Shown: positions 19,266 through 37,266 of the stretch, piece by piece
Layout of the letters: each line of letters starts with the position of its first letter
How positions within the stretch are numbered: the first letter of the stretch is position 1
Sequence record: NC_048048.2
Length of the DNA stretch: 64,000 nt
Strand: one strand, 5' to 3'
Notes under the pieces: generated by a model
Seen by the model: only the letters and a program-made list of their open reading frames with translations
Told to the model about the DNA's origin: nothing
Databases searched by the model: none
Position numbers and translations under genes: made by a program

Positions 19266-19267
19266 CC

Positions 19268-19525: not shown

Positions 19526-19527
19526 AC

Positions 19528-20486: not shown

Positions 20487-20497
20487 ACGCCCTGGTC

Positions 20498-20524
20498 AAG
20501 GCCCGCCCTCACGGCGGGCCTTTT
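20498..20524 (+). terminator. Intrinsic terminator
   Basis: AAGGCCCGCC-CTCAC-GGCGGGCCTT plus T run. Confidence 0.85.
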
Positions 20525-20680
20525 CCTTGACCTCGCGCCGTTGTTAACCTTAACGTGCAATCGTTCGCCTGTTAACCTTAACGGGACATGCCTGATCCGT
20601 TAACCATAGCCTGCAAAAAAGCTGTTGACTCGCATCCAAGCCCTATGCGAGAAAGGGTCATCAGCAACGGGAACGATCCC

Positions 20681-21079
20681 ATGACCCAAGAATACACCGC
20701 CGAAGAACGCCAAGCCAAGTTGACCGAAATGGCCGATCACTGGCGCGAGCAACTGAAGGACGCCCAAGCCCGCCTGGACATGACCGTCCTCGTCGGTCAA
20801 GGATTCGTCTGCGCTCTGGAGCGCGATCTTTCCATGGCTATCCGCGCTGACGGTCCCGACCGCTATCGCCTGTGGCCAGTATCGGCGCGCATGGTTCCCA
20901 TCCTCCACTTCACCAAACTTGACGCCATGCGGGTCGCCGCGCACTGGAATGGCAACCTCCCCGACGATAAGCAGGACCTGCGAGTCGTCGCCACCCATTA
21001 CCGCGACGTGCTTCAAGCCTATGTCGAGACCGCAACGGCGCAAATCGCCTGGATCGAAGGCGGCTGCAAGGCCGCCTGA
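20681..21079 (+). CDS. Hypothetical protein
   Basis: Promoter 20625; start reassigned to MTQEY. Confidence 0.75.
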   Translation: MTQEYTAEERQAKLTEMADHWREQLKDAQARLDMTVLVGQGFVCALERDLSMAIRADGPDRYRLWPVSARMVPILHFTKLDAMRVAAHWNGNLPDDKQDLRVVATHYRDVLQAYVETATAQIAWIEGGCKAA

Positions 21080-21269
21080 CCTTGACGCCCTCCGGCTCCG
21101 GCCGGAGGGTTAATTTCTGCCCAGCCCGCGTTAAGGTTAACCCGCCGCCGGCCTGGGATTAACCTTAACCCGCAACCGTTTGCGGGTTAACCATTCGATG
21201 CAAGAAAGGTGTTGACACGCATTTAGGCCCTATGCGAGAAACGCCTATCAGCAACCGGGAAACACCCCC

Positions 21270-21833
21270 ATGCCGCAATTCGTTCTCGACACTTCGGGCA
21301 AGGCCCGTGTTGGCGCCACCAAGAATTTTCCGAACGGCGTCACCATCAACTGGAATGATCTCGACGCCTTCACCCAAGGCTATATCGAGGCGCTGTTTTT
21401 CACCGAAAATTCCCCGGCCTTCACGTCGGACGAATGGCACGGCGAGGAATGTCAAGCCGCGCTTGAGGCCGGCACGTCTGACGGCTCGCTCCCCGGTGAC
21501 GCCGGTTTCGCCGACCTTCATGAAACCGCCCTGGCCACCATCGTCGAGGAGTGCGCCGCCTTCCAACGCGAAAACGCCGACCTGTTGGCGCAAGCCTATG
21601 GCCACAACTTCCCGGCGCGGGTGATCGGCGACGGCACCTTGCCCGATTCCCACCGCCCGGCGTGGGACTATGACGAGGCGGCGGCGGGGCGGGATTTCTG
21701 GTACACTCGCAACGGCCATGGCGTCGGCTTTTGGGATCGCGGCCTAGGCGAGGTCGGCGACAAGCTTTCCGACGCCTGCCGTTACTCTGAGGTTTACGTG
21801 TCGTTCGAGGCTGACGGCAAGGTTCATCTCTAA
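21270..21833 (+). CDS. Conserved phage hypothetical (AGRDFWYTRNGHGVGFWDRG motif)
   Basis: Promoter 21212 plus GGGAAACACCCC leader. Confidence 0.85.
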   Translation: MPQFVLDTSGKARVGATKNFPNGVTINWNDLDAFTQGYIEALFFTENSPAFTSDEWHGEECQAALEAGTSDGSLPGDAGFADLHETALATIVEECAAFQRENADLLAQAYGHNFPARVIGDGTLPDSHRPAWDYDEAAAGRDFWYTRNGHGVGFWDRGLGEVGDKLSDACRYSEVYVSFEADGKVHL

Positions 21834-21839
21834 CCCGGC

Positions 21840-21867
21840 AAAGGCCCGCTTGACAGCGGGCCTTTTT
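21840..21867 (+). terminator. Intrinsic terminator
   Basis: AAAGGCCCGCT-TGAC-AGCGGGCCTTT plus TT. Confidence 0.85.
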
Positions 21868-21995
21868 CGTGCCTGCCCCACCTGGGTTAACCTTAACGCC
21901 AGCCCGCTTCGCCTTAACGCTCTTTTTGCAAGAAAACAGTTGACTCGCATCCAAGCCCCATGCGAGAAAAGGTCATCAACCACGGAGCGCCGCAC

Positions 21996-22370
21996 ATGGC
22001 CAAAACCGAAACCGTCGACCTCGCCCTGGTCATGCTCGATGAGCAAAAGGCCGCCCTGGGCGCCTCCCGGACCTTCACCTTTCACGAAGTCCGCGCGGCG
22101 TTCATCGACGCCAAGGCCCTGACCACGCTTGAGGCCACCTTGCACAAGATCGCTGAACACGAGTGCAACGGCTATCGCAGCGACATCACCGAACGTTTCG
22201 ACATCCGCCGCCGCGACAAGGCGCAAGCCGCCGCCACGGCCATTGCCGAGCGCTACGGCCTGACGCTCGATTTCAACGGCGACCCGCGCGGTTCGGCCCT
22301 GAAGATCAAGACCCCGCACACCGGCCGTTACAACGGCTTTGGCGGGCGTGAGGATGGATGGTGCGTCTAG
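21996..22370 (+). CDS. Conserved phage hypothetical (FNGDPRG..LKI motif)
   Basis: Promoter 21940, GGAG RBS; start reassigned. Confidence 0.8.
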   Translation: MAKTETVDLALVMLDEQKAALGASRTFTFHEVRAAFIDAKALTTLEATLHKIAEHECNGYRSDITERFDIRRRDKAQAAATAIAERYGLTLDFNGDPRGSALKIKTPHTGRYNGFGGREDGWCV

Positions 22371-22439
22371 CGCCATCCTGACCCCCTTCCACCCCCTGTA
22401 GCGCGTCCCTCTCAAACCCCTGGCCCTAGGAGACACCCC

Positions 22440-22610
22440 ATGGCCCGCACCACCACCCACACCCGCACCGACAAGGCCAAGCGCGAGACGCTGGCGCCGT
22501 GGGAATATGACCGCCAGCACAAGGCGGACAAGAAAGCCGCCAAGGCGTGGCGCACCGATCGCCAAGGCCGCCGCGCCCTGGCCTCTTCGGACGCCTTCAA
22601 GGCCCACTAG
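22440..22610 (+). CDS. Small basic protein (56 aa)
   Basis: AGGAGACACCCC leader; manually translated MARTTTHTRTDKAKRE... Confidence 0.75.
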   Translation: MARTTTHTRTDKAKRETLAPWEYDRQHKADKKAAKAWRTDRQGRRALASSDAFKAH

Positions 22611-22703
22611 GCGGGCTCGAAAAAAGTTCGGCTCGATGCGAGAAAGCTGTTGACTCGCATCGAGCCCCTATGCGATAAAGGGTCATCAAACGGAGACACC
22701 GAC

Positions 22704-22868
22704 ATGACCCACCTGCAACGCGCCACCACCGACCAAGTCACCGTCGAGCACTACGCCGTTTCGGGCGGTCAACTGACCGTCACCCGCGCCCCCGCCCGCG
22801 CCCCGATCTATCGCCTGAACGGCTTCAAGATCACCTACTTCGAGGCCAAGCGTAAGCTCGCCGCCTAA
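22704..22868 (+). CDS. Small hypothetical protein (54 aa)
   Basis: Promoter 22650, GGAGACACC leader. Confidence 0.75.
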   Translation: MTHLQRATTDQVTVEHYAVSGGQLTVTRAPARAPIYRLNGFKITYFEAKRKLAA

Positions 22869-22882
22869 GACCCCTCCCCGAT

Positions 22883-22912
22883 AAGGCCCCCTCCCTGGAG
22901 CGGGGCCTTTTT
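22883..22912 (+). terminator. Intrinsic terminator
   Basis: AAGGCCCC..GGGGCCTT stem plus TTT. Confidence 0.75.
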
Positions 22913-23102
22913 CGTGGCCGTTAGCCAAGCGTTAAGGTTAACCCGTAGGGTTGATTTCGTTAACCTTAATGGGGCGTTAAGGTTAACGGGCCGGCCCAGG
23001 CTGTTAACCCTGCGGGCGAAGAAAGTGCGATCCTGTGCAAGAAAGCTGTTGACTGCATAAGCGTCCTATGCGACAAAGGGTCATCAACAACGGAGCTACC
23101 CG

Positions 23103-24355: not shown

Positions 24356-24874
24356 CTACCTCCGGTCGATATTGTAGCACCCGACGCTGCGCGCATCGAC
24401 ATGCTCATGCACCTCGTAGGCCGGATCGCTCAGGTCCAGCACCACGCTGGCTTCGATGAAGTCGGCGCAGATCGTCATCACCTCGCCGGCCTCGCCCTCG
24501 TGATCGATGACGATAGTGCAGTCGATCGCGTCCCAGCGCTCGGGCTCGGTGAGCGGATAGACCTCGATCTCGGCGGGGCTGATCATCGTGCCCGAGATCA
24601 GGGTCTCCACCAAGTTGTAGACCTGGAAGCCCTGCACCGGCCCGGTGACCTCGCTGGCGCGGGGATTGTCGAGATCGGGACTGACGACCACATACCAGTT
24701 GAGCGGGCTGTAGGGCTCCCGGCGCGGATCATGCTCGACGCTGAACGATTCGCCGGCGCGCAGCGCGCCCAGACGCAGGGCGTCCTGGACACGCGCCTTC
24801 AGGTCGGGCGCGGCGCTGGCCGGATCGCAATAGGCCTCGAAGAGTTCGGCGCACAGCGCGCGGTAGTCGATCAT
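24356..24874 (-). CDS. Hypothetical protein
   Basis: Last gene of the minus operon; start reassigned to MIDYR (ATGA overlap). Confidence 0.75.
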   Translation of the reverse strand: MIDYRALCAELFEAYCDPASAAPDLKARVQDALRLGALRAGESFSVEHDPRREPYSPLNWYVVVSPDLDNPRASEVTGPVQGFQVYNLVETLISGTMISPAEIEVYPLTEPERWDAIDCTIVIDHEGEAGEVMTICADFIEASVVLDLSDPAYEVHEHVDARSVGCYNIDRR

Positions 24875-25221
24875 GACATCACCGGGGCTTTGAGGTCTTC
24901 GCAGGCGTCCTCCAGCGGCGGGGCGGCGCGATAGGCCAGCGGATGGGCGCCGGCTTCCCACTGCGCCAGCAAGAGGCGATTGTAGCGCGCGGCCGAGTGC
25001 ATGTAGAGGACATACATCTGCGTGGCCAGATAGGTGCCCGGCTGCTGGGCGCGCACCTTGCAGGCGGCCTCGGCGGCGGCCCGCCACTCGATCTGGGCCT
25101 GGGCCAGGGGAGACGGCGCCGGCGGCTTGAGCGTCTGGCGCGCCGCCCACAGCATGCAGGCCAGACAGAAGCCGGCGATCACCGTCTGGCAGGCGATCAG
25201 GATGAACTTGCTGCGGGTCAT
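24871..25221 (-). CDS. Hypothetical membrane-anchored protein
   Basis: N-terminal hydrophobic helix; ATGA overlaps. Confidence 0.75.
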   Translation of the reverse strand: MTRSKFILIACQTVIAGFCLACMLWAARQTLKPPAPSPLAQAQIEWRAAAEAACKVRAQQPGTYLATQMYVLYMHSAARYNRLLLAQWEAGAHPLAYRAAPPLEDACEDLKAPVMS

Positions 25222-25412
25222 GCGCGCGCCTCACGCTTCAGTCGCTTGACGGCTGTCATCTCGACCATGTCGGCGTCGCGCCGCAGCGCCTGGGCCTTGC
25301 GCTCGTGCTGGGCGGCCATCTCGTCTTCCAGGTGCGCCTGATAGCGCAACTCGGCGGCCTTGATGCGCGTCTCAAGCGGCAGGCGCTTGCGCCAGTCGAT
25401 CTGGGCGTCCAT
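25218..25412 (-). CDS. Small hypothetical protein
   Basis: Operon-packed. Confidence 0.7.
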   Translation of the reverse strand: MDAQIDWRKRLPLETRIKAAELRYQAHLEDEMAAQHERKAQALRRDADMVEMTAVKRLKREARA

Positions 25413-25637
25413 CTATTCGACCGCCTTGTTGCGCACCGCCCAGTACCAGCCCGCGATCATGTCGACGATGATGTCGCCATCGCAGCCCTCGATCGCATCG
25501 CCGATCATCGCGCGGTCGGTGAGGTCGCGATAGATGAAGGCGACCGTCTGGGCGGCCGGGTCATCCTTGCGCGCCGCCAGGGCCTGGATCACCTCGGCGG
25601 GGTCTTGCAGTTCGAAGAGGGCGGTGATCTCACTCAT
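25413..25637 (-). CDS. Small hypothetical protein (paralogue of 25634-25897)
   Basis: Shared D.AA..V..I..D..R....GWY pattern. Confidence 0.75.
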   Translation of the reverse strand: MSEITALFELQDPAEVIQALAARKDDPAAQTVAFIYRDLTDRAMIGDAIEGCDGDIIVDMIAGWYWAVRNKAVE

Positions 25638-25897
25638 GACGTTCCTTTCGTGGGCACATGCGTGGCCACCAGTTTGTACCAGCCGACGACCAGGGAGATG
25701 ACGTCATCATCCTCCATGTTCGTCAGGATCGCGTTCAGGCCGGGCCGCTCGTGCATGTCATCCCAGATGCCCAGCACCACATAGGCGGCGTCATCGCCAG
25801 CCTCGGCCGCGTCTTCCAGCGCGCCCATGATCTCATCGACCTCGCGCACGCCATAGAGGCGGTCGAGCAGCGTGCGGGCCTGGGCTTCGGTGGTCAT
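25634..25897 (-). CDS. Small hypothetical protein (paralogue of 25413-25637)
   Basis: Start reassigned to MTTEAQ; ATGA overlaps. Confidence 0.75.
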   Translation of the reverse strand: MTTEAQARTLLDRLYGVREVDEIMGALEDAAEAGDDAAYVVLGIWDDMHERPGLNAILTNMEDDDVISLVVGWYKLVATHVPTKGTS

Positions 25898-26118
25898 CGG
25901 GTCTTCATCCAGTCCAGTAGCGGCGGCAGGAAGCCGTCGTAGAAAGCAAAGGCCAGCGCGACCAGGAACACCAGCCACAGGCCAAGGCCGATGACGGTCT
26001 TCAACAGCCAGTGCTCCTCCTCCGGCTGGACTTCCCAGCCGGTCCCGTCGCACTCGCCCATCTGGCAGAGGATGCAGTCCTCGTGATGGTGGTAGAGGAC
26101 CTTGTCAGTCGTCGTCAT
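25894..26118 (-). CDS. Small membrane protein with Cys/His cluster
   Basis: HHHEDCILCQMGEC followed by a TM helix. Confidence 0.65.
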   Translation of the reverse strand: MTTTDKVLYHHHEDCILCQMGECDGTGWEVQPEEEHWLLKTVIGLGLWLVFLVALAFAFYDGFLPPLLDWMKTR

Positions 26119-26329
26119 CGAACTCGTCCGGGTTCTCTTCGTCATAGACGCAGTCGGGGCAGGTCAGCACGCCGTCGATCGTCACGCGCCAGCCATTGGC
26201 CTCCAACTCCGTCTTGCCCTCTTCCAGCGACAGCGTGAAAGGCCCCGCCGTGCGGAAGGCTTCCACCGGAACGCTTTCCGTCCGGCACTTGTCACATGAC
26301 ACGTCTACGATCGCGCGGTCAAATCCCAT
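26105..26329 (-). CDS. Small Zn-ribbon protein
   Basis: CDKC...CPDC pairs. Confidence 0.7.
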   Translation of the reverse strand: MGFDRAIVDVSCDKCRTESVPVEAFRTAGPFTLSLEEGKTELEANGWRVTIDGVLTCPDCVYDEENPDEFDDDD

Positions 26330-26342
26330 GACACGCCTCCTC

Positions 26343-26903
26343 TCAGATTTCCGACAGATGGTCCATGACCGTCGGGTATTTTTCCATCATCTTGTTCGCG
26401 AAGTCCTCGGCGTGCAGTCGGCCATCCTTCGTCGCGCCGCCGGCCGCCAGGGCCTCGATCCGATCCAGCAGCAGGCAGGCGTCGCGCTCGCAGCCCACAT
26501 AGTAGGGCTCCATCATCCCGATCAGCGAGCGGATTTCATCGGCGATCTCGTCGAGGAACCCGCCGGTCACCACGATCTTGCGGGTGACGCGATCGCGCGC
26601 CTCCTTCTCCTCGGCCTTCTGGGCCGCGTCCCTGGCCGCCTCGACTTCGTGGCACACCCACTTGATCGTGTTGTTGAACATCGCGCCCTTTTCGGGATGC
26701 ACCGACTGGATGTGGTCGCGCACGGGGGCGAACAGGCGGTGATAGTGATAGCCGCTGCGCATCCAGGTCTTGCCACAATAGGGGCAGGCCATCCGCCCGC
26801 CCATGGCCATCTGCCGCAGCGCGGCGGCGACCCCTGGCTCGGCCAGCGGCGTGGCCTCCATCATCTGGCTGGCATAGTCCTGGTAGGGGCGGGCCTCGAA
26901 CAT
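26343..26903 (-). CDS. Hypothetical protein with Zn-finger-like motif
   Basis: CPYCGKTW...H...H. Confidence 0.7.
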   Translation of the reverse strand: MFEARPYQDYASQMMEATPLAEPGVAAALRQMAMGGRMACPYCGKTWMRSGYHYHRLFAPVRDHIQSVHPEKGAMFNNTIKWVCHEVEAARDAAQKAEEKEARDRVTRKIVVTGGFLDEIADEIRSLIGMMEPYYVGCERDACLLLDRIEALAAGGATKDGRLHAEDFANKMMEKYPTVMDHLSEI

Positions 26904-27703
26904 CAGAACCCCGCGTCGACCGGCGGCGCCTGGAAGATCGCGCAGCGATTGAACGCCACCTCGGCCAGGACCCGCAGGGCTCCATCGCGATCGCCGCTCT
27001 CATAGGTTGGCTTGGCGTAGTCGTTGACGCCGATCACCATGTTGTTGCGCGTCACGGTGTCATTGGCCAGGACCAGTTGCGTCCCGGCGCCCTGGAGGCT
27101 CTTGAAGCCGGCGGCAAGCTGTTCCTCGGGACTGGCGCCCGTGGTCGTCTTGAAGCCGACCACGAAGACGTCGGGCCGCGTCTTGCGGATCGAGCCGATC
27201 AGCTTGTCGGCCGGCGTCAGCCGCATCATCTGCCAGCCGTCCTCGGTCTTCAGCCGCGTCTCGTGCGGCCCGGACTTGGTCGACAGGTACCCGCCGCCCC
27301 AGTCGTCGTGGCTGTCGCCCGAGGTCTCCTTCAGGATCGAGCCCTCGTAGTCGCATAGCGCCGCGCTCATCACGATCATCTTCGTCTCGGGATCGGCCAG
27401 CAGCTTGTCGAGCAGCGCCTTGACGTCGCTGTTGTAGACGAGCTTGCTATAGGGATCGGCCATCTTGGTCAGATGCAGCTTGACCCGCTGGCGCGAGTAG
27501 AGGCTGTAGTGCCGCTCCTCCAGCGGGTGCGCGTAATAGGCCTCATAGGTCGCCTTGTTGCGCCGCATGTGCCATTCCATCTCGATACTGAAGTCGACAT
27601 GCAGTTTCTTGGCCGCCCCGCCGAACGCCTGGGCCGCCAGCGACAGATGGTTACGCACGGGCGCGAAGGTGCCGCCGCCCAGGATGTGAATCTTGCCGTC
27701 CAT
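26903..27703 (-). CDS. CoaB-like phosphopantothenate-cysteine ligase fold protein
   Basis: ILGGGTFAPVRNHL, VMSAALCDY, FVVGFKTTTG and LVLANDT match the CoaB/DFP C-terminal motif order; start reassigned to MDGK. Confidence 0.65.
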   Translation of the reverse strand: MDGKIHILGGGTFAPVRNHLSLAAQAFGGAAKKLHVDFSIEMEWHMRRNKATYEAYYAHPLEERHYSLYSRQRVKLHLTKMADPYSKLVYNSDVKALLDKLLADPETKMIVMSAALCDYEGSILKETSGDSHDDWGGGYLSTKSGPHETRLKTEDGWQMMRLTPADKLIGSIRKTRPDVFVVGFKTTTGASPEEQLAAGFKSLQGAGTQLVLANDTVTRNNMVIGVNDYAKPTYESGDRDGALRVLAEVAFNRCAIFQAPPVDAGF

Positions 27704-28017
27704 CAGTCGTCTCCAAGGCGCGGAGCCATGCTGGCGTTCCACCACGCGCCGGCCGGCAACGTCTCCCCCGGATGCAGCCAGTGCGTGAACGGCGCGAACG
27801 GATAGCCCTTCTCCAGGACGCCGTGAATCCAGGCGCCCATCACCGGCACGCGCTCCTTGTTGGCCGCCAGCCAGCAGAGCGCGTTGTGCTCATGCCGATA
27901 GGGCTTGCGCGCGTCGGCCCAGCCCTTGCCGTTCCCGGACGGGAACAGGCTGAAGGTCAGCATCTCGCCCAGGATGTAGCCCAGGTGGGCGATCTCGTCT
28001 TCGGGTAGGGTGCTCAT
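27703..28017 (-). CDS. Hypothetical protein
   Basis: Start reassigned to MSTLPE; coupled overlaps. Confidence 0.7.
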   Translation of the reverse strand: MSTLPEDEIAHLGYILGEMLTFSLFPSGNGKGWADARKPYRHEHNALCWLAANKERVPVMGAWIHGVLEKGYPFAPFTHWLHPGETLPAGAWWNASMAPRLGDD

Positions 28018-28253
28018 GATCTCGCCGGGAAGCTGTTCTTCATGTCCACGTAGAGATAGTGGATCAGTTTGGTCTGAAGGCGCGCATCGAACGGCGCAAG
28101 GCCCAACTCCTGCAAGGTGTTCCAGGCGCTCAGCGTCGCCAGGGCGCACGGATTGATCCGCTGGTCGCGCTGAAGGACCTTCAACATGTCCTTGGTCGTG
28201 CCGTCGTCCGCATGGAAGATCGCCAGGAGGTCCTCGTGGGTGCGTCCGATCAT
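28014..28253 (-). CDS. Hypothetical protein
   Basis: ATGA overlap with the upstream stop. Confidence 0.65.
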   Translation of the reverse strand: MIGRTHEDLLAIFHADDGTTKDMLKVLQRDQRINPCALATLSAWNTLQELGLAPFDARLQTKLIHYLYVDMKNSFPARS

Positions 28254-28711
28254 GAAATCCACTTCTCCACGCTCAGCGCCGGCGCCTCCGGCTCAGCCTC
28301 CACCGGCGCGGCCGGCAGCGGCGGGAACACCGACAGGTCGATGTAGGTCCAGGACTTGATCCACCAGCACCAGACAAGGCGCCCATGCGGCTTGGGATGG
28401 AATTGGTTGGGCGGCACCTCGCCCTTGATGCCGTAGAGCTTCTTCAACTCATGGCGCAGGGCCTTGGCCAGCTTCTCGGGCGGCGCGGCGTCAGCCGTCC
28501 AGGGTACGGCCACCAGATCGATGTCGCGCTTGCGGCTGCCGTGGATCGCCAGGGCGTAGCCGAGATTGCGGGCCTCGCGCCGCAGCGGGCGCATCAGCCG
28601 GCGCGCCAGGGCCTTGACCTTGCGCGGATCGGCCGCGTCGGTGGAATGACCGCCGTTGTGGACCTTGATCGGCTCGACCGACTTGTCGGGGGACTTCTTC
28701 TTCATGCTCAT
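28250..28711 (-). CDS. Minimal nucleotidyltransferase-like protein
   Basis: LAIHGSRKRDIDLVAVPW fits the Pol-beta superfamily hG[GS]..DhDh motif. Confidence 0.55.
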   Translation of the reverse strand: MSMKKKSPDKSVEPIKVHNGGHSTDAADPRKVKALARRLMRPLRREARNLGYALAIHGSRKRDIDLVAVPWTADAAPPEKLAKALRHELKKLYGIKGEVPPNQFHPKPHGRLVWCWWIKSWTYIDLSVFPPLPAAPVEAEPEAPALSVEKWIS

Positions 28712-29082
28712 GGGTCTACGCCTTCGGCCTGCGGCCTTTCCAATCTGCCCAAGTTGGCCAGGAGCATTTCCGGGAATAGCTTTGGGTGGTTCCAGCGCGT
28801 GTCGGGCGGGAAAAGGACCAAACTCTCGCCACTGAGATAGGTGAAGACCCTGTCGACGATCTCGATCATCAGCGCCTTCATCTCGTCGTTGTTGAAGCGA
28901 CTAAGGTCGTTCCAGGCGATCTCCCCATAGGGAGTGACAACTTTCACGTCGCTGTAGTCACCGGTCTTGGTCGACGGAGAGATGCCAGCGTGCAGGTCTT
29001 CTAGCCCGGTGTTGCGTACGCAGTTGAGCACCAACGACAGGGCGTCGAGTTCATCAGGCTCCCATCCAGGGAAGCGGTCCAT
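28708..29082 (-). CDS. Hypothetical protein
   Basis: Coupled overlaps; visibly lower GC than its neighbours. Confidence 0.7.
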   Translation of the reverse strand: MDRFPGWEPDELDALSLVLNCVRNTGLEDLHAGISPSTKTGDYSDVKVVTPYGEIAWNDLSRFNNDEMKALMIEIVDRVFTYLSGESLVLFPPDTRWNHPKLFPEMLLANLGRLERPQAEGVDP

Positions 29083-29315
29083 CAGTAGTCCCTCGGCGGG
29101 TCATAGGTCCGCTTGTTGTGGTCGATCACGGCCTCGTCCATGTATTCGTCCACCAGATCGGCGAACGCCTCGGCTGCCTTCTTGTCCGTGAAGCGCGACG
29201 ACAGCCCGATGCCGTGACGGAAACGTTCGGTCTCCAGGGGCACGAGGCGCACGTAGAAGAACGGCCCGTCGGCGTCCGCGTCGCCATAGACCTGGGTCCA
29301 GTCGCTATCACGCAT
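29082..29315 (-). CDS. Small hypothetical protein
   Basis: Start MRDSDW overlapping the upstream stop. Confidence 0.65.
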   Translation of the reverse strand: MRDSDWTQVYGDADADGPFFYVRLVPLETERFRHGIGLSSRFTDKKAAEAFADLVDEYMDEAVIDHNKRTYDPPRDY

Positions 29316-29889
29316 CGTGTTCACGCCCTTCCAGCATCGCCTTGTGGCGCTCGGGCCGCATCAGCAACCAGACCTCTTCGTCCTTGCTGCCGTCGATCCC
29401 TTCGACCTTGATCCCGTGGTTGACGCCCAGGATCGCCCAGAAGCCCACGTGCGCGCCCTTGACGGCCTTGGGCACGTCGATCAGCACCGCCCCCAGGGCG
29501 CGGGCCAGCAGGTACTTGCTGTAGCGCAGCGTCAGGTCCAGGTCCTCCGGCCCATAGGTCGGATCGAAGGTGCAGCGCACCGTCTTTTCGTTCCCCGCGT
29601 CGATGACGCTGTCTTCCACCGCCTCGATCACCACGATCCCGTCATCGTCGCGGCCGTCGGACAGGATGAACCACTCGGCCTTGTAGTCCTTGTAGTCGCG
29701 CCAGATGCGGTGACGCTCCTCGATCTGGAAGATCATCACCGCGTCGAGAAAGCCCCGCTCCAGGGCGTGATCGATGTCGCCCAGCCGCGCCTTGCCGGTG
29801 ATCGGCGTGTGGTCCTCGTTGTGCGGGAACTCGATCCGCAGCGTGACGATCTCGTGGGCTTCGCCCGACAGATGCTTCATGGCGCTCAC
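29308..29889 (-). CDS. Hypothetical protein
   Basis: GTGA overlap. Confidence 0.75.
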   Translation of the reverse strand: MSAMKHLSGEAHEIVTLRIEFPHNEDHTPITGKARLGDIDHALERGFLDAVMIFQIEERHRIWRDYKDYKAEWFILSDGRDDDGIVVIEAVEDSVIDAGNEKTVRCTFDPTYGPEDLDLTLRYSKYLLARALGAVLIDVPKAVKGAHVGFWAILGVNHGIKVEGIDGSKDEEVWLLMRPERHKAMLEGREHDA

Positions 29890-30173
29890 CAGTCGCGCCC
29901 GAAACCGTCGTCATCGTCGTCGAAGTCGATGTCCCGGTCGCCTTCGGATTGGGGTTCGTAGTCCAGGAGCCACCAGACAGCGCCGGAGGCGTCGGCCCAG
30001 ATGCCGTGGATGAACCACGTGCCCCAGTAGTCCTCGCCCATCTCGATCTCGGTATCCTGGCCAGCATAGAACTCGCCCTCGGCGGTGATCACCGCCAGCA
30101 GGTCGTTCCGCACGTCGATGCGGCTATCGTCCAGGCCGACGCGGTCGGCGAACTTCAGGTTGACGGTCTTCAT
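29886..30173 (-). CDS. Small acidic hypothetical protein
   Basis: ATGA overlap. Confidence 0.7.
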   Translation of the reverse strand: MKTVNLKFADRVGLDDSRIDVRNDLLAVITAEGEFYAGQDTEIEMGEDYWGTWFIHGIWADASGAVWWLLDYEPQSEGDRDIDFDDDDDGFGRDW

Positions 30174-30478
30174 GATTCCCCCGACCAGCCGGAATACCGG
30201 CGCGGCTTGATATGCTCGATGACGTTGGCGGTGACGGTCAGGTGGTTGATGGCCACGTCCCCATACTCGTCGACATTGTCGACGTCCTTGCGGACGCGCA
30301 CGACCATGACGACGTAGTCGCCTTCGGCCGACTCGTCGTTGACCGAGAACGCCAGTTCCTCGCCGGCCTTGATCGATAGCGCAAGGTCCGCCGGCCAGTC
30401 GCGGCTGTAGACCACGACCCGCTCGCCGTCCTCGGAGAGGAGGTTGAAGGTGATGTCGAAATCGCGAAGGACGCTCAT
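30170..30478 (-). CDS. Small beta-rich protein, paralogue family A
   Basis: YSRDWPADLALSIKAGE...YVVMVVRVRKDV. Confidence 0.75.
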   Translation of the reverse strand: MSVLRDFDITFNLLSEDGERVVVYSRDWPADLALSIKAGEELAFSVNDESAEGDYVVMVVRVRKDVDNVDEYGDVAINHLTVTANVIEHIKPRRYSGWSGES

Positions 30479-30783
30479 GTGGGCTTCAGTCTCCTTTCCA
30501 GGTCTTGCACGACTTCCCAGGCGCCGACCGCCAGGGCGGTCTGGAACTGGGTCTCGATGATCGCGCGGCGCAGGGCGTCCTTCATCGGTTGCAGCCCCAG
30601 GTCAGTGCGCCCCTTGATCGTGTCGATCGCGATCTGCTTGGCGATGGCCCGCTCGATCCGCTTGGCCTCCGTCACCGCCCGCTGGCAGCCCCAGTAATGC
30701 TCCTGGGCCTTGCGCAGGCGCTCGCGCACCTTGATCGCGTCGGCGATCTGCTCGTACATCTCGATGACGGCGGGCGTGTCCAT
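30475..30783 (-). CDS. Hypothetical helical protein
   Basis: Start reassigned to MDTPAV. Confidence 0.7.
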   Translation of the reverse strand: MDTPAVIEMYEQIADAIKVRERLRKAQEHYWGCQRAVTEAKRIERAIAKQIAIDTIKGRTDLGLQPMKDALRRAIIETQFQTALAVGAWEVVQDLERRLKPT

Positions 30784-30788
30784 GGCGC

Positions 30789-31091
30789 CTAGCGGATCGC
30801 CTTCCAGCCCTGCGGCTTGTTCGCGCCATAATCGACCACGCAGTCGCCGGTCACTTCCGTCAGGCGCCCCGTCGTCTGGCTGACGAAGTAGAAGCCGTCG
30901 CTCTCGCCATGCTTTTCGACCTTGCCGGTCGAGAAGTCGTCGAAGTAGGGGCCGGCGGCCGAATGGCAGGTCACCCGACCCGGCTTGCCGTAATTGAAGG
31001 TGCGCTCGCTCTCGGCGTCGGTGCAGGCCACCAGCCCAGCGGTCGCCAGGGCCACGGCTCCGGCGATCAGCGCGATTCGAAACTTGGTCAT
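30789..31091 (-). CDS. Putative lipoprotein
   Basis: Signal peptide with lipobox LVA-C; AAGGAG RBS. Confidence 0.75.
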   Translation of the reverse strand: MTKFRIALIAGAVALATAGLVACTDAESERTFNYGKPGRVTCHSAAGPYFDDFSTGKVEKHGESDGFYFVSQTTGRLTEVTGDCVVDYGANKPQGWKAIR

Positions 31092-31100
31092 GAGGTCTCC

Positions 31101-31388
31101 TTAGATATTCGAAAGACGGGTATGTTCGTCGAACCGTCGCTGGGCTTCCAGGTAGACGGACTCGGCGACAAGCTGATCGATGATGGCCTCTCGCAAGTCC
31201 GCGCGCAGGCTGCTCACCTGATAGGCCTCGGGTGGCGTGTCGGGGTAGTGCTCGTCGCCTTCGTCGAAGTGCATCCGGTCGCAGATCATGCCCGCGAGGC
31301 CTTGGACAACGAGGCGCGCCGACAGCAGCTTGGCGTCGGCCACTTCCTTGAGCATCAGCGGCGACAAGGGCGCGTTGTCCTCGCTCAC
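31101..31388 (-). CDS. Hypothetical protein
   Basis: Operon-packed. Confidence 0.65.
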   Translation of the reverse strand: MSEDNAPLSPLMLKEVADAKLLSARLVVQGLAGMICDRMHFDEGDEHYPDTPPEAYQVSSLRADLREAIIDQLVAESVYLEAQRRFDEHTRLSNI

Positions 31389-31612
31389 AGCGACACCGTG
31401 TCGATCTCGACGCTCGACAGCCGCAGCGGCCCACAGCCAACGTCGTTGCGATAACCGAAGGTGCGTTCGACCCTGGTGATTTTCAGCGACGGCTCACGGG
31501 GCAGATTGATCGTCTCGCCCTTGCGGATCGCGGCGGCTTCCTCCGCATCGATATCGAAGCTGCGCAGGTACGTGCCGCCAACCAGGACGGCCAGGGTGAT
31601 GTCGCGGTTCAT
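31385..31612 (-). CDS. Small beta-rich protein, possible family A
   Basis: RSFDIDAEEAAAIRKGE...LKITRVERTF. Confidence 0.65.
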   Translation of the reverse strand: MNRDITLAVLVGGTYLRSFDIDAEEAAAIRKGETINLPREPSLKITRVERTFGYRNDVGCGPLRLSSVEIDTVSL

Positions 31613-31914
31613 GCTTCGTCTTCCTCGCTCGCCGGGCCGTAGTCGACCACATGCACTTCGATCGTATGGGCCAAGCCGCCCCACGGCGGATTGTCGGCGT
31701 CGCCCACCCGGCCCACCGGCGTCTTCTTGACCATGGTCACGCCCATCAGGCGCGCCCCCGCCGGGATGCTGCCCATCGGCTCGGCCAGATCGAGCACCAC
31801 ATAGTCGCGCGTCGACAGCGTCAGCGCCTCGATCGCTGGCCAGGAGCGCGAGACGAACTCGCCGACCTGATCGTCGCGATCGCGGATGAAGAAGTGGACG
31901 TGGTACAGCGACAA
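31609..31914 (-). CDS. Small beta-rich protein, family A
   Basis: VSRSWPAIEALTLSTRDYVVL...VTMVKKT. Confidence 0.7.
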   Translation of the reverse strand: MSLYHVHFFIRDRDDQVGEFVSRSWPAIEALTLSTRDYVVLDLAEPMGSIPAGARLMGVTMVKKTPVGRVGDADNPPWGGLAHTIEVHVVDYGPASEEDEA

Positions 31915-31947
31915 GCGGGGCTCCGGGCTGGATGACTTGCAGATGGT

Positions 31948-32331
31948 CTAGCGGGACAGTGGCGGACGTGTCAACGACTTTCTTGCAGGGTTGTGCTCGT
32001 CCTCGTAAGCCTTCCGGCGCTCCCAGGCATCGTCACACAGCGCCTGGGCCACGAGCACGTCGATCGCGCGCACTCGCAGGGTCTGACGCGCCATGTACGA
32101 GGCGCCGGTGCCGCGCTCGACGATCAGCGGAACGCCCTTCTCGGACGCATAGTAGTCGGCGCGCTTGATCTGCTCGAACACGGCCAAATCGTTGACCTCG
32201 CTGGCCGCCTCCGCCAGGGCGATGCGCGCCTGGAGCAACGCATCCCTGCGGCTAAAATGCAGGGCGATCGGCTCTGGGGCGAACTTCTTCGGGTCGGTCT
32301 CGACCCCGAAATCAGGTGGCGCCATGCGCAT
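31948..32331 (-). CDS. Hypothetical protein
   Basis: GGAG RBS; start MRMAPP. Confidence 0.65.
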   Translation of the reverse strand: MRMAPPDFGVETDPKKFAPEPIALHFSRRDALLQARIALAEAASEVNDLAVFEQIKRADYYASEKGVPLIVERGTGASYMARQTLRVRAIDVLVAQALCDDAWERRKAYEDEHNPARKSLTRPPLSR

Positions 32332-32518
32332 GCTTATGCTCCCCGAGAGGCTTCTGCTTAAAGATCGCCCCGAAGAACGGCTCGATCCCTGGTGAGTAGG
32401 CCGTGATCGGCTGCCAGCGCCAGCGTTCCTGCCAGGGATCGGGCCGCACGGCGGTGACCTGCACGCCGATCCCGCCGCCCAGGTGCGAGAAGTCGGATAT
32501 TTCGTTTTCAGCGGCCAT
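32312..32518 (-). CDS. Small hypothetical protein
   Basis: Operon-packed. Confidence 0.55.
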   Translation of the reverse strand: MAAENEISDFSHLGGGIGVQVTAVRPDPWQERWRWQPITAYSPGIEPFFGAIFKQKPLGEHKHAHGAT

Positions 32519-32840
32519 CGAAGGGCTCCGGCGGCGGCCGGCGTTCGATCACCTGCACCAGGACCTGCACATGCGATACGAACGGCTCGGGGATGTTGAG
32601 CCCGCCGTCCACGTGCTTGATGACATTGAGCACCTTGACCCGGTAGACGCCCGGCTCGACCTTCACCGCCTCGGCGCCAAGGTCGCCTTCGATCCGCACC
32701 GGGATCACGAGGTAGTCGCCGCCCTTGATCGTCAGGGCGTGCATCGTCGGCCAGCCCTTCGACCACACCGTGCCCATGGACAGGCGCGTGGAGTCGACGA
32801 AGTTGACCTCCAGGTCGATTGCCTTAGCCTCGATGGTCAT
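32508..32840 (-). CDS. Small beta-rich protein, family A
   Basis: WSKGWPTMHALTIKGGDYLVI...YRVKVLNVIKHV. Confidence 0.75.
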   Translation of the reverse strand: MTIEAKAIDLEVNFVDSTRLSMGTVWSKGWPTMHALTIKGGDYLVIPVRIEGDLGAEAVKVEPGVYRVKVLNVIKHVDGGLNIPEPFVSHVQVLVQVIERRPPPEPFDGR

Positions 32841-33091
32841 GCGCCCTCGCCATTGCCATAGACGATCACCGGATCGGCCCGCATGTCGACGACCACGCAC
32901 CGCGCGCCGTGCAGCGCCGTCTGGTGGGCGGCCAGCCGCTCCAGACGCTCGCGGTTGGGACTGCGGATCGGCCCGTGCTCGTTGCCCATCTCAGCCCAGC
33001 CGTCGGGCGTCAGGACATAGCAACGAAACAGCGACATCTCCTCGGCCAGCGCCGCGATCAGTTCTTCGTCGGTCAGGGGGCGCAGGCTCAT
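32837..33091 (-). CDS. Small hypothetical protein
   Basis: ATGA overlap. Confidence 0.7.
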   Translation of the reverse strand: MSLRPLTDEELIAALAEEMSLFRCYVLTPDGWAEMGNEHGPIRSPNRERLERLAAHQTALHGARCVVVDMRADPVIVYGNGEGA

Positions 33092-33321
33092 GGGATCAGA
33101 GGACTCGTGTGGCAGGAAGCAGGCGTCACCAGGGCCTTGATCAGGGTGACTTCCACGGCGGGCGGCTTGAGACCCACTTCGCGCAGCACATCACTGATCA
33201 GCCAGTACCGGCCGCCCACCTTGATCTTGGCGCCCTGGACGATGGTGACCGCAAGATCGGCGGGAGCCAGGAAGGTCGAGACGACCTGACCTCGGTAGAT
33301 GAATTCGACCTTGGTCGTCAC
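33088..33321 (-). CDS. Small beta-rich protein, family A
   Basis: MTTKVEF...PADLAVTIVQGAKI...ISDVLREV. Confidence 0.75.
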   Translation of the reverse strand: MTTKVEFIYRGQVVSTFLAPADLAVTIVQGAKIKVGGRYWLISDVLREVGLKPPAVEVTLIKALVTPASCHTSPLIP

Positions 33322-33614
33322 GCCTCGATCCCCCGCTGGAGCGCCGCGCGGCGCACGATCGCCTGGATGATCCTGATCGACTGGGTGTGGGCCAGCGTCG
33401 TGTTCTTGTGAACCGTCATGGCGCCGGGATGGCTGTCGATGTCGCGATGCACGCGGTCGACGATCCAGAAGACGCCTTGCAGCTTGAACTTGACGCCTTC
33501 CTGGATACTCAGCGCCAGGAGATCGTCGGCCTCGAACGAGGAGACCATGACGTTGGTGGGACGCCCGCCTGGAACGTCCTCGATCTCCTGCCAGAATTCA
33601 ACCTTCGTCGTCAT
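33318..33614 (-). CDS. Small beta-rich protein, family A
   Basis: MTTKVEF...DDLLALSIQEGVKF...VDRVHRDI; same first 7 residues as its neighbour. Confidence 0.75.
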   Translation of the reverse strand: MTTKVEFWQEIEDVPGGRPTNVMVSSFEADDLLALSIQEGVKFKLQGVFWIVDRVHRDIDSHPGAMTVHKNTTLAHTQSIRIIQAIVRRAALQRGIEA

Positions 33615-33949
33615 GTAGAAGCCTTTTGCAGTTCGGGTCCGTCCGTGACATCCACCGACAGATGGACCTCGGAGATGAACGGCGTGCCCGCCTCATCTGT
33701 ATGACGCGCGATCGTCTTGGTGATGCCGAAGACTGTGCCGATGTAGTCGCCCTCCATTTTCTTGTTGAGGACATTGTCGCCGGGACGGATGCGCAGCATG
33801 ATGTCGTCGCCCCACCGGAAACCCATCGCGACCACTTCCGAGAAATGGCCTATCTCAACGATCGCCAGCGGAGGTATGCCGGTAATGTCGGTAGGCTCAT
33901 CGTTCAGAATGAAAAGCGTGGCGATCACGTGGATCGGGTCGTGGCTCAT
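33611..33949 (-). CDS. Small beta-rich protein, possible family A
   Basis: EGDYIGTVFGITKTI...SEVHLSVDV. Confidence 0.7.
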   Translation of the reverse strand: MSHDPIHVIATLFILNDEPTDITGIPPLAIVEIGHFSEVVAMGFRWGDDIMLRIRPGDNVLNKKMEGDYIGTVFGITKTIARHTDEAGTPFISEVHLSVDVTDGPELQKAST

Positions 33950-34230
33950 TCTTCGTCGTCCTTGTCGAGCACGCCGCGCAGCATGCAGGTCAGGAAAATC
34001 CCGTCGATCTTGGCCTTGCCCTCGGTCCCGAACGCGATCTCCCGGTCGACCGTCAGCACCTTGACCTCGTAGGTCTTGCCGTCGGTCGCCATGAAGCTGA
34101 ATCGGTCGGTCTTGGCGAACGACAGCGCGTCGCGCCGGGGAAACCGGCCGAGGAAGTGAGCGTCGATCAGGACCTCGGCGTATTTCGCGCCGGCGGCCCT
34201 GACCGTCACATGGACAGGGATTTTGGCCAT
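33946..34230 (-). CDS. Small beta-rich protein, family A
   Basis: GRFPRRDALSFAKTDRF...YEVKVLTVDREI. Confidence 0.75.
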   Translation of the reverse strand: MAKIPVHVTVRAAGAKYAEVLIDAHFLGRFPRRDALSFAKTDRFSFMATDGKTYEVKVLTVDREIAFGTEGKAKIDGIFLTCMLRGVLDKDDEE

Positions 34231-35015
34231 CAGCCAACGCCCCTGGCGATTTCTTCCTGCGCCACGGTCGCGGCCTGCTTGCCGTCGTAGCGGCCGGCAT
34301 AGTTGGCCTTCAGGTGCGCCATGACGTCGCCGAGCTTGGCGTCGGGCTTGTCGAGCTTGAAGACGCCGATGATGCCGCGCAGTTCCGGGACCGTCAGAGG
34401 CTCGGGCTCGGCCGGCACATAAGCCTCCAGCACGAAGATTTCGCCGGCGGCCTTGCGCGCGCCCGCTTCGTCGCCGCGCTGGATCATCGCCGCGTGCGTG
34501 GCCTTGGCGCCCTTCAGGAAGACGCGCGCGATCTCGATCACCTCGTCGTCGGACGGGTCCTTGCGCGATTCCGCACCCAGGTCGATCAGCGCCTGCTCCA
34601 GGCGACCCAGCGGCCAGCCTTCCTCGGCGGCGGTCTGTTCGGCAGCCGCGTCGGCGCCGGCCAGCAGGGTGTCGAACTCGTCATTGACCACGCCGATGGC
34701 GTCCAGCACGGCTTGCTCGCCGCGCGGCGCGAACTCGGCCTGGACCTTGGCCAGGGCTTCGGCGCGCAGCGGCTTGAAGAAGCCGGCGTTGTCCTTCTTG
34801 GCCTGTTCGAGTTGGCCCAGCGGCCAGCCTTCCTTCTCGGCCTGCTTGCGCAGCGCCTTGGCCCCGGAGGTGAACTTGGTCGACGACACCGTCGCGGTGA
34901 TCTCCGACAGCAGCAGGTTCAGCAGCGTCACGTCAGCGGGCCGGGCGGCGACGCCATTCTTTGGGTCGCCCTTGGCGGCGGCCAGATCGCTGCGGATTTT
35001 CTCGATGAGGCTCAA
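34230..35015 (-). CDS. GatB/YqeY-like protein with internal duplication
   Basis: N-terminal MSLIEKIRSDLAAAK and C-terminal LGDVMAHLKANYAGRYDGK typical of YqeY; EGWPLG.LEQA occurs twice. Confidence 0.65.
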   Translation of the reverse strand: MSLIEKIRSDLAAAKGDPKNGVAARPADVTLLNLLLSEITATVSSTKFTSGAKALRKQAEKEGWPLGQLEQAKKDNAGFFKPLRAEALAKVQAEFAPRGEQAVLDAIGVVNDEFDTLLAGADAAAEQTAAEEGWPLGRLEQALIDLGAESRKDPSDDEVIEIARVFLKGAKATHAAMIQRGDEAGARKAAGEIFVLEAYVPAEPEPLTVPELRGIIGVFKLDKPDAKLGDVMAHLKANYAGRYDGKQAATVAQEEIARGVG

Positions 35016-35058: not shown

Positions 35059-35099
35059 AAAGAAAACGAGCCGCCTTTCACAGTCTTCGGCGGCTCGTT
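35059..35099 (-). terminator. Intrinsic terminator/attenuator upstream of the minus operon
   Basis: Minus strand AACGAGCCGCC...GGCGGCTCGTT followed by TTCTTT. Confidence 0.8.
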
Positions 35100-35283
35100 A
35101 TGGTTCCAATCGGCCGGACATGCTCCGGTGGGCGAACGCTCACTTCATCTCAGCCTCCTGCGCTACCTTCGGTCCACTTGCGCCTCTCATGTGGGCGCGT
35201 GGCAATAGAGAGCCCCGACGTTCCTCCACCTCAAGGTTGCTGTCAAGCAGGAAATCACCGTGACGCGATCTACGTCACATGCT

Positions 35284-35457: not shown

Positions 35458-37266
35458 ATGGCTGGTCAGTCCGCCAATTCCGCCAACATCGATCGCGTCG
35501 CGCGTCCCAAGTCGAACGCCGTCAACGCGATCCTGAACCCGGAATACGTCTACTGGGAGCCGGACTGGGTCAAGGTCCGCGACACCCTGGCCGGTCAGCG
35601 CGCCGTCAAGTCCAAGGGCCAAGCCTACCTGCCCAAGAACCTGGGCTCTGACGACAGCGAATATGCCGCCTATCTGGCCGGCGCCATCTTCCACAACATG
35701 GTCGACCAGACGCTGAACGGCATGACCGGTCAGGTCTTCCGTCGCGCCCCGATCATCCGCAATCTCCCCGAGAAGCTTCAGGAGAAGGTCATCCAACTGG
35801 GCCAGGACGGCTCGGGGCACGTGGCCTTCACCAAGACCGTCGTGCGCGAGGTCTGCTCGATGGGCCGCTATGGCGTCCTGGTCGATGCCCCCACCACCTC
35901 CGGTGACAGCTACGCCGTCGGCTATCGCGCCGAGGACATCCTGGACTGGGAGATCGAGCGCGTCGATGGCGTCCAGCGCCTGACCCGCGTCCTGCTGCGC
36001 GAGTTCCGTCGCGTGCGCTCGGTCCTGGCCGGCCGCGCCCGTATCCGTTCGGGCGGCGGCGCCTACCAGTACGAGACCATCTATCGCGAACTGGTCCTCG
36101 AAAACATCGACGGCCGCTGGACCTACTACCAGAACATCTACGACAAGGTCGGCCCGCAGGGCGTGCCCACCGACATCCTGCGTCCGGTGATCAACGGCAA
36201 TCCGCTGACCGCCATTCCGTTCGTGTTCTTCGGCCCGACGGGCAACACGCCCGACTGCGAGAAGCCGCCGCTCCTCGACATCGCCGAACTGAACATCTCC
36301 CACTACCAGGACTATGCCGACTTCCAGCACGGCAAGAAGTACACCTCCCTGCCGATCTACGTCGTACCGGGCGGCAGCGAAGGCGGCGCCGACGAGTACA
36401 AGATCGGCCCCAACACCATCTGGGAAGTGCCGCTCCAGTCGACGCCGGTCATCCTGGAGTACAAGGGCGATGGCCTGAAGACCCAGATGAACGCCCTGGC
36501 CACCAAGGAGCGCCAGATCGCCGCGATCGGCGGCCGTCTGCTGCCGGGCCTGGGCCAGGGCATCAGCGAATCGAGCGAGCAGGCGACCATGCGCGGCGCC
36601 TCCGAGCAGTCGATCCTGATGAACGTCATCCTGGCGGTCCAGGACGGCATGTCGCTGGTTCTGCGCTACTGGGCCGCGTGGCGCGATGTTCCGATGAACA
36701 CCACCGCCTCGCTGCGCTACGTCATCAACTCCAACTTCCTGACCGGCTTCGCCGACGCCCGCGTGCTGCGCGCGATCCAGATGATGTGGGAAGCCGGCCT
36801 CGTGCCGATCGAGGTTCTGTTCGAGAACCTGCGCGACCTGGAGGTCCTGTCCGACGACTGGACCATCGAGATGTTCACCGATCGCATGCAGGACCCGACG
36901 GCCTTCATCAACAACCCCGACGCCCAGGCCAAGGTTCGCGGCTACGCCAACCGCAAGCAGGAACTGGACGAGGCCGCCCGCAAGATCGAGCAAGGCCAAG
37001 CCGACCGCGCCCTGGACATCCAGGAAGAGAGCATCGACGGCCTGGACGATGGTGACGTGCTGCGTCGCCGCGAGGACCAGCAGATGGACTTCGAGCGCCA
37101 GCAGCACGAGGACCAGATGCAGTTCCAGTACGACAAGCTGGCCTCCGACGAGGAACTGGCCAAGCAGAAGCTCGCCACCCAGAAGGCCATCGCCGCCAAG
37201 AACGCCCAGGCGGCGGCGCAGCGATCGGCCAATCCGACTCAGCCGCGTACCCCCGGCTCCCTCTAG
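35458..37266 (+). CDS. Portal protein (DUF4055-type)
   Basis: 602 aa; W.KVRDTLAGQRAVK, Y.AYLAGAIFHN, GRYGVLVD, IPFVFFG and PPLLDIAELNISHY motifs of DUF4055/phiCbK-like portals. Confidence 0.85.
   Translation: MAGQSANSANIDRVARPKSNAVNAILNPEYVYWEPDWVKVRDTLAGQRAVKSKGQAYLPKNLGSDDSEYAAYLAGAIFHNMVDQTLNGMTGQVFRRAPIIRNLPEKLQEKVIQLGQDGSGHVAFTKTVVREVCSMGRYGVLVDAPTTSGDSYAVGYRAEDILDWEIERVDGVQRLTRVLLREFRRVRSVLAGRARIRSGGGAYQYETIYRELVLENIDGRWTYYQNIYDKVGPQGVPTDILRPVINGNPLTAIPFVFFGPTGNTPDCEKPPLLDIAELNISHYQDYADFQHGKKYTSLPIYVVPGGSEGGADEYKIGPNTIWEVPLQSTPVILEYKGDGLKTQMNALATKERQIAAIGGRLLPGLGQGISESSEQATMRGASEQSILMNVILAVQDGMSLVLRYWAAWRDVPMNTTASLRYVINSNFLTGFADARVLRAIQMMWEAGLVPIEVLFENLRDLEVLSDDWTIEMFTDRMQDPTAFINNPDAQAKVRGYANRKQELDEAARKIEQGQADRALDIQEESIDGLDDGDVLRRREDQQMDFERQQHEDQMQFQYDKLASDEELAKQKLATQKAIAAKNAQAAAQRSANPTQPRTPGSL

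Follow-up and report, generated by a model that had tools for sequence, protein, structure and literature searches.

Gene-accordion expansions, such as that of poxvirus K3L, and modules of small early genes for host take-over, such as the SPO1 module and the early ORFans of T4, are among the described systems that most closely resemble the locus presented here. This locus is a cluster of small genes just upstream of the portal gene of Caulobacter phage CcrSC (MH588547.2, 317,489 bp, Bertelyvirus, host C. vibrioides CB15). The stretch of DNA that was analysed (sequence record NC_048048.2), hereafter called the window, was identified by megablast as bases 1-64,000 of this genome. A preliminary description of the window had proposed that about eight open reading frames (ORFs) encode highly diverged paralogues of one small beta-rich domain, and that they form a diversifying repertoire of binders shaped by gene-accordion evolution. 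Our analysis confirms that a real and previously undescribed paralogous family is clustered in 4 kb, with four copies being certain, six probable and eight possible. The proposed expansion was thus borne out as a lineage-specific multiplication of one small domain. Like the known accordion and take-over modules, the cluster consists of small genes that are private to the phages, and their copy number differs between close relatives. In contrast to such systems, however, the copies are ancient and have diverged strongly, unrelated genes lie between them, and they evolve under purifying selection. As a phenomenon, the multiplication of small ORFan proteins in one lineage of large phages belongs to a known kind.

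All eight ORFs and the peptides quoted from them are present in the sequence, and each of the ORFs corresponds to an annotated coding sequence of CcrSC (8/8 cases). The ORFs at 32508, 31385 and 33611 carry upstream extensions, the real starts being located at 32840, 31612 and 33949, respectively. The GC content at third codon positions (GC3) of the eight candidates ranges from 0.74 to 0.91, which matches true coding frames in this genome of 65% GC and therefore confirms the reading frames.

The relatedness of the candidates was assessed by Smith-Waterman local alignment, where the scores were expressed as z-values against 500 shuffles, and 88 pairs of a candidate and a non-candidate neighbour served as controls (mean z 0.07; 3% exceeding 2). 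Similarity was found between gp063c and gp071c (z 12.5, 35% identity across 79 aa), gp063c and gp075c (z 7.5), gp068c and gp071c (z 6.5, phmmer E-value 2e-5), and gp063c and gp068c (z 3.3). Profile comparisons with hhalign, in which the sequence groups were kept disjoint, gave probabilities of 97% for gp063c and gp071c, 66% for gp068c with either of these two, and 80% for gp075c against a nine-member core (E 1.3e-5). Both phmmer and an iterated hidden Markov model (HMM) were run against the six-frame ORFs of the whole 317-kb CcrSC genome and the CcrBL9 and RB23 regions. They first gathered gp063c, gp068c (in round 1 of the HMM), gp071c, the orthologues, two RB23 copies and an extra CcrBL9 copy (gp074c of that phage), after which the gp075c group was added; no sequence from outside the block was recruited from this target set. 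By these sequence comparisons, gp063c, gp068c, gp071c and gp075c can firmly be assigned to one family, which we refer to as family A. The preliminary description had graded gp075c as weak, while it proved to be a firm member by profile comparison, HMM iteration and a structural model described below. Conversely, gp073c, gp074c and gp076c, which had been graded strong, are weaker by sequence. A likeness between gp051c and gp075c (blast E 2e-4, obtained without composition correction) was dropped, as hhalign gave only 6.8% for this pair.

The family is restricted to Bertelyvirus phages. A four-protein profile searched with HMMER against 1.84 billion protein representatives retrieved CcrSC, CcrBL9 and RB23-type proteins plus one artefact, and a word-indexed search of 5.8 billion sequences agrees with this restriction. 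The artefact, a 4,807-aa eukaryote-like ankyrin protein (E 8.5e-6) and the sole match outside the phage group, was rejected because its score sums ten sub-9-bit motif matches to ankyrin repeats (ASKGWQDLC.LAIEKGA). When gp063c and gp076c were compared by tblastn with 50,697 phage records, CcrSC and CcrBL9 alone were found, and a search with gp067c returned just its self-match. The family has no match in Pfam, and its matches in PHROGs v4 were insignificant, the best being those of two genes to a tail assembly chaperone (E 0.05) and a minor tail protein (E 0.03); the remaining genes had none. CcrBL9 is the closest relative of CcrSC, with about 88% identity over the region by megablast, whereas RB23, BL47, C1, C2, J4 and CcrC3 are more remote and align with CcrSC at the DNA level solely around the portal gene. 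Six-frame profile searches of the whole genomes counted four firm copies in CcrSC, five in CcrBL9 and three in each of the six more remote phages. The number of firm copies thus differs between Bertelyvirus phages, ranging from 3 to 5, and in every counted genome these copies all lie upstream of the portal gene, no more than about 4 kb away from it.

The genes gp073c and gp074c form a separate pair, family B, which is firm at the sequence level (z 15.4, hhalign 97%) and is represented by two copies in CcrSC, two in CcrBL9 and one in RB23. Its connection to family A includes a z-value of 3.6 for gp063c and gp073c. Moreover, the best non-self match of the family B profile genome-wide was gp063c (24%, 39 columns), and gp067c came seventh. 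When a 12-member family profile was compared by hhalign with 27 neighbouring gene groups, the top three non-members were exactly gp076c (50%), gp067c (13%, over 50 collinear columns) and the gp073c/gp074c profile (4.7%). Among 1,298 CcrSC ORFs of 60-160 aa, gp076c was the first non-member (50%, P 1.6e-4) and gp067c the third, while gp074c and gp073c ranked 43rd and 45th overall, which corresponds to about the 40th and 42nd of some 1,294 non-members. An ORF at 47161-47523 (+) that ranked seventh against the family profile was rejected, as the aligned part is located inside a spurious N-terminal extension. In the family HMM iterations, gp076c was always the best non-member, with E-values of 0.16, then 0.086 and then 0.008. 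Neither gp067c nor gp076c showed significant pairwise similarity to any member in the Smith-Waterman comparisons, gp067c gave no HMMER signal to the family, and the gp076c profile, in effect just one sequence, did not retrieve the family in the reciprocal search.

To obtain structural information, we built AlphaFold2 models of gp063c, from 8 alignment rows, and of gp074c, from 4. The gp063c model (predicted local distance difference test score (pLDDT) 78, predicted template modelling score (pTM) 0.66) has strands at residues 7-14 and 20-28, a helix at 30-35, and strands at 41-46, 53-69 and 75-90. The gp074c model (pLDDT 72.5, pTM 0.63) has strands at 3-11 and 20-29, a helix at 31-35, and strands at 42-45, 48-61 and 80-89, the last two being joined by a disordered loop. 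The element order is therefore common to both models, namely two strands, a short helix and three strands with a long beta4-beta5 hairpin, and the proteins are predicted to be stand-alone small beta-barrels of about 75-110 aa. The preliminary description was right in calling the domain beta-rich, apart from the segment W/F-P...AL(S/T)(I/L)..G(D/E) in its shared motif order, for which the models predict a short helix placed between strands 2 and 3. This helix carries the W/F-P..(A)L(S/T)(I/L)..G motif, and the motif as a whole (WPADLALSIKAGE in gp063c, EADDLLALSIQEG in gp074c) runs from the end of strand 2 through the short helix into the turn that leads to strand 3.

Searches of BFVD, a library of predicted viral structures, connected the two families in both directions. 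The gp063c model retrieved its own CcrBL9 orthologue, then the independently predicted gp075c (112 aa; E 1.6e-5, template modelling score (TM) 0.68/0.63) and, at rank 3, the 77-aa CcrBL9 orthologue of gp073c (E 8.8e-4, TM 0.38/0.47). The gp074c model retrieved both CcrBL9 family B proteins and, at rank 4, a family A protein of CcrBL9 (its gp065c, E 3.4e-3). In addition, 15 BFVD entries are common to the top-50 lists of the two models. For gp067c, the ESM Atlas model (pTM 0.70) has neighbours that overlap with those of both AlphaFold models (DUF6464, Lhr WH-domain clusters, an Acidobacteriota Clp_N-containing cluster, a phage Gram_pos_anchor cluster, and GluRS/L25), which indirectly supports the view that gp067c may have the same fold as gp063c and gp074c.

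Foldseek searches of the PDB and the AFDB clusters gave no significant match. The best matches among solved structures were the oligonucleotide/oligosaccharide-binding (OB) domain of the MrfA helicase, ribosomal protein bL25, and the anticodon-binding barrel of GluRS/GlnRS. MrfA, a DUF1998 helicase, has an OB-like beta-barrel domain (PDB 6ZNP, residues 491-556; PMC7797055), and Lhr-type helicases have an equivalent domain. The likeness of the phage proteins to this domain is one of fold only, with a score at noise level and no sequence similarity, and the phage proteins differ from it in being stand-alone and acidic rather than part of a helicase. An OB fold is a five-stranded barrel that presents a nucleic-acid-binding face and has its helix after strand 3 and before strand 4, whereas the helix in the gp063c and gp074c models lies between strands 2 and 3. 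The scores for bL25 and the GluRS/GlnRS barrels were below noise level (structural TM only about 0.5 for bL25), no Pfam match to Ribosomal_L25p (PF01386) was found at E-values up to 1, and bL25 is basic whereas the phage proteins are acidic. The beta-grasp binders (the B1 domains of proteins L and G, streptokinase, the glutamine synthetase N-domain and MucBP) have no sequence relation to the phage proteins, whose helix comprises only 5-6 residues and which are more barrel-like through the long beta4-beta5 hairpin. Structural neighbours were also found among widespread unnamed phage proteins of 60-75 aa, which comprise ESM Atlas clusters of 78-298 members and BFVD entries from T4-like, Rhizobium, Pseudomonas and actinophages. 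The gp074c model superposes on them with a TM of 0.8 by match and a root mean square deviation of 1.7-2.2 Å, and many of them are common to the match lists of both models. The unnamed 60-75 aa proteins have no detectable sequence similarity to the barrels and, in contrast to the clustered paralogues, are single-copy in the data examined.

The paralogues share 15-35% identity. In a maximum-likelihood tree, the gp075c lineage, which all three phage types possess, stands apart as a deep branch, and the remainder is without resolution, with branches of 2-5 changes per site that show the duplications to be old. At least the gp075c lineage is older than the split of the phage species. The proposed gene accordion holds in so far as the copy number varies, but the copies are not near-identical tandem repeats. 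Indeed, the low identity, the branches of more than 2 changes per site and the interleaving of six unrelated genes (gp064c, gp065c, gp066c, gp069c, gp070c and gp072c) leave a recent accordion unsupported. Loop lengths vary on a conserved scaffold, the insertions being confined to the beta3-beta4 and beta4-beta5 loops. At the DNA level, the stretch of about 20 nucleotides (nt) for the MTTKVEF N-terminus of gp073c and gp074c is conserved in both phages while its flanks differ, which points to constraint rather than recent conversion.

Selection was estimated as the ratio of nonsynonymous to synonymous changes (dN/dS, omega) by the Nei-Gojobori method with a codon bootstrap. These values are gene-wide and refer to orthologues of one species pair, CcrSC and CcrBL9, with two sequences per group. 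Seven of the eight genes are under purifying selection (omega 0.04-0.36), and these low ratios confirm that the genes encode functional proteins. Omega values below 1 speak against an accordion of recent date and against diversifying selection acting on whole genes; diversification was not seen between these two phages. The sole near-neutral genes of the cluster are gp067c and gp070c, with intervals that span 1.

Features of the CcrSC window. Omega values are for CcrSC versus CcrBL9.
Feature	Coordinates	Strand	Length (aa)	Description	Omega	95% interval
gp063c	30170-30478	-	102	Family A, firm; hub, linked to gp071c, gp075c, gp068c and gp073c	0.36	upper bound <1
gp067c	31385-31612	-	75	Possible member; near neutral	1.22	0.66-2.39
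gp068c	31609-31914	-	101	Family A, firm	0.25	upper bound <1
gp071c	32508-32840	-	110	Family A, firm	0.19	upper bound <1
gp073c	33088-33321	-	77	Family B, probable remote relative of family A	0.32	upper bound <1
gp074c	33318-33614	-	98	Family B, probable remote relative of family A	0.19	upper bound <1
gp075c	33611-33949	-	112	Family A; deep subfamily, also with CcrBL9 gp078c and RB23 gp071c	0.18	upper bound <1
gp076c	33946-34230	-	94	Possible member	0.04	upper bound <1
Operon gp047c-gp077c	24356-35015	-		31 small genes, annotated as hypothetical (from annotation and coordinates)
Left terminal repeat	~1-23,946			ORFs repeated at an offset of 293,543
Portal gene gp078	35458-37266	+		From annotation
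gp050c/gp051c	25413-25897	-		Adjacent paralogue pair
gp055c	26903-27703	-		Weak DFP/CoaB C-terminal domain match
gp065c	30789-31091	-	100	Lipoprotein-like N-terminus
gp070c	32312-32518	-		Near neutral	0.84	spans 1
gp077c	34230-35015	-	261	YqeY/GatB C-terminal-like domain	0.73
Hairpin	~35060-35100	-		Upstream of gp077c
TTAA-N7-TTAA sites	3086-22980	+		12 sites

The preliminary claim of about eight paralogues stood for the four firm genes and, with probability, for the family B pair. With respect to the other members, it has to be weighed against the possibility that the cluster holds two unrelated families, A with four genes and B with two, next to two unrelated small beta proteins, gp067c and gp076c, the motif order then being generic for a beta-hairpin-rich composition. 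Such a view would agree with the absence of significance for all pairs that include gp067c or gp076c and for most A-B pairs, with the hhalign probabilities of 4.7% and 13% and the failed reciprocal search with gp076c, and with the spurious, repeat-summed match of the same motif to ankyrin repeats. It is less easily reconciled with the ranks of the four doubtful genes against the family profile, with gp063c being the top genome-wide match of family B, with predicted elements of gp063c and gp074c that are identical in order and spacing, with the reciprocal BFVD matches and heavily overlapping structural neighbours, and with the location of every candidate inside 4 kb. Altogether, we regard it as unlikely. 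Common descent from one ancestral gene by old duplications can be considered very probable for the four family A genes and likely for the six genes of families A and B, but for all eight genes together it remains somewhat doubtful. Family B is a probable remote relative of family A, as judged from a motif of 25 residues, the shared order of the predicted elements, the reciprocal structure matches and the common structural neighbours. Membership of gp076c is slightly favoured, while for gp067c the two sides are evenly balanced. Several findings weigh against our overall reading of the cluster as a family of paralogous barrels that act as binders. Specifically, the A-B link is weak (TM 0.36-0.47 between the models, profile probabilities of at most 43%), and both models rest on shallow alignments. 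Furthermore, the omega values well below 1 argue against an ongoing arms race at the time scale that separates CcrSC and CcrBL9, and gp076c is 99% identical in these two phages.

The eight candidates are part of a block of genes, gp047c-gp077c, that has the left terminal repeat on one side and the portal gene on the other. Neighbouring genes mostly overlap at their start and stop codons by 1, 4, 11 or 20 nt (range 1-20 nt), and a consensus scan of the block for internal sigma-70 promoters and terminators found none in excess of shuffles. For these reasons the block reads as one translationally coupled leftward operon, and the candidates would be co-transcribed and translationally coupled just inside the terminal repeat. 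The operon is separated from the structural module, which is encoded by the opposite strand, by a 440-nt divergent intergenic region. Some tens of nt ahead of the gp077c start, a GC-rich hairpin of 11 bp is followed by UUUUCUUU (free energy -31 kcal/mol, z -2.75), whose loop is longer than the terminator scan lists. It looks like an intrinsic terminator or an attenuator heading the leftward operon. An Rfam search of the window gave no match, and among RNA sequencing runs none was found to contain the phage. The exact sequence TTAA-N7-TTAA, the form of a CtrA box, occurs 12 times where 0.04 sites are expected from shuffles; all 12 sites are inside the terminal-repeat region and none is in the 24-35.5 kb block. 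These sites fit the published idea that genes of phiCbK-like phages are under CtrA control (PMC9437464).

Some other genes of the operon have recognizable features. The gp077c protein has a domain resembling the C-terminal part of YqeY/GatB (Pfam PF09424, E 5e-7; phrog_1460 'tRNA amidotransferase', E 2e-17), an internally duplicated EGWPLG.LEQA segment (DNA repeat 34591-34631 / 34801-34841) and an unusually high omega. The gp065c protein, which is encoded amid the barrel genes and kept in CcrBL9 and RB23, has a lipoprotein-like N-terminus (..ALATAGLVAC), and gp055c matches PF04127 with an E-value of 5.6e-5 and 23.5 bits (cutoff 22). The gp050c/gp051c genes are a second pair of adjacent paralogues, unrelated to the barrels (phmmer E 5e-7, hhalign 81%), and the CcrSC gene gp057c is present in two copies in CcrBL9. 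Small local duplications thus recur in the block. The terminal repeat of BL47 (249-4442) contains five tandem copies of a three-gene cassette (171, 192 and 195 nt; gp050-gp064), of which RB23 has one. This cassette is a genuine recent tandem amplification, in contrast to the barrel family.

With respect to function, we tentatively consider the proteins to be putative soluble, non-enzymatic binders of host or phage macromolecules, a possible rather than a probable assignment, although it is the best supported one. The sole invariant or near-invariant positions among the paralogues are W, A, L, G and K residues of the core and motif, and hence neither a polar triad nor a metal site is conserved. 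No signal peptide and no hydrophobic or membrane segment was seen in the candidate proteins, and family A is acidic (isoelectric points of 4.4-5.9, net charges of -2 to -10). The absence of catalytic signs, the confinement of insertions to loops, the acidic and soluble character of the proteins, and their location in an operon of small phage-private genes that diverges from the structural module favour a binding role. In other large phages, a divergent operon of small ORFans is typical of early host take-over genes. The proteins might thus act without catalysis in the cytoplasm during host take-over, probably early in infection. The scaffold would then be maintained by the conserved core and motif, and the beta3-beta4 and beta4-beta5 loops, being variable in length, would make each paralogue specific in its own way. 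A putative repertoire of mini-binders on one scaffold, in which the loops of each paralogue neutralise a different Caulobacter factor or defence system and the gain and loss of copies track the host defences, is a speculative extension that we regard as rather unlikely; no known anti-defence family was found for the cluster proteins.

Two other roles appear less probable than a binding function. Paralogous families of virion proteins exist in other jumbo phages, for example the inner-body proteins of phiKZ, and since the cluster adjoins the portal gene and two of its genes have PHROG matches to tail proteins, the products might be associated with the virion or take part in its assembly, for instance as head-internal, ejected or decoration proteins or as chaperones. 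However, the cluster is on the strand opposite to the structural module and set apart from it by the divergent intergenic region, the PHROG matches lack significance, the proteins are much smaller than the known inner-body proteins, and the other phiCbK-like genera, which have the same virion architecture, contain no relatives. We therefore view a virion role as improbable. A little less probable still are small nucleic-acid-binding barrels of the OB or L25 type that would act on RNA or DNA, for example on tRNA together with the neighbouring gp077c, or as regulators. The best solved matches, with MrfA, bL25 and GluRS/GlnRS, would be in line with such a role, as would the YqeY domain of gp077c. 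On the other hand, protein-binding beta-grasp domains (protein L and G, streptokinase, the glutamine synthetase N-domain) score alike, the acidic family A proteins lack conserved basic or aromatic surface residues, and the position of the helix differs from that in the canonical OB fold.

Jumbo phages consist for the most part of small genes without annotation, and this unknown space shrinks with the finding that one scaffold accounts for 6-8 of the 15 genes immediately upstream of the portal gene of CcrSC. A family that is absent from Pfam and PHROGs is now defined, and it offers a compact set of targets for pull-down experiments in Caulobacter, a genetically tractable host. Should the mini-binder repertoire be real, it would be the equivalent, in phages, of antibody-like diversification of a scaffold. 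Paralogues that bind different host factors would offer a useful way into host take-over or counter-defence in phiCbK-like phages; otherwise, the cluster would be one more lineage-specific expansion of ORFans.

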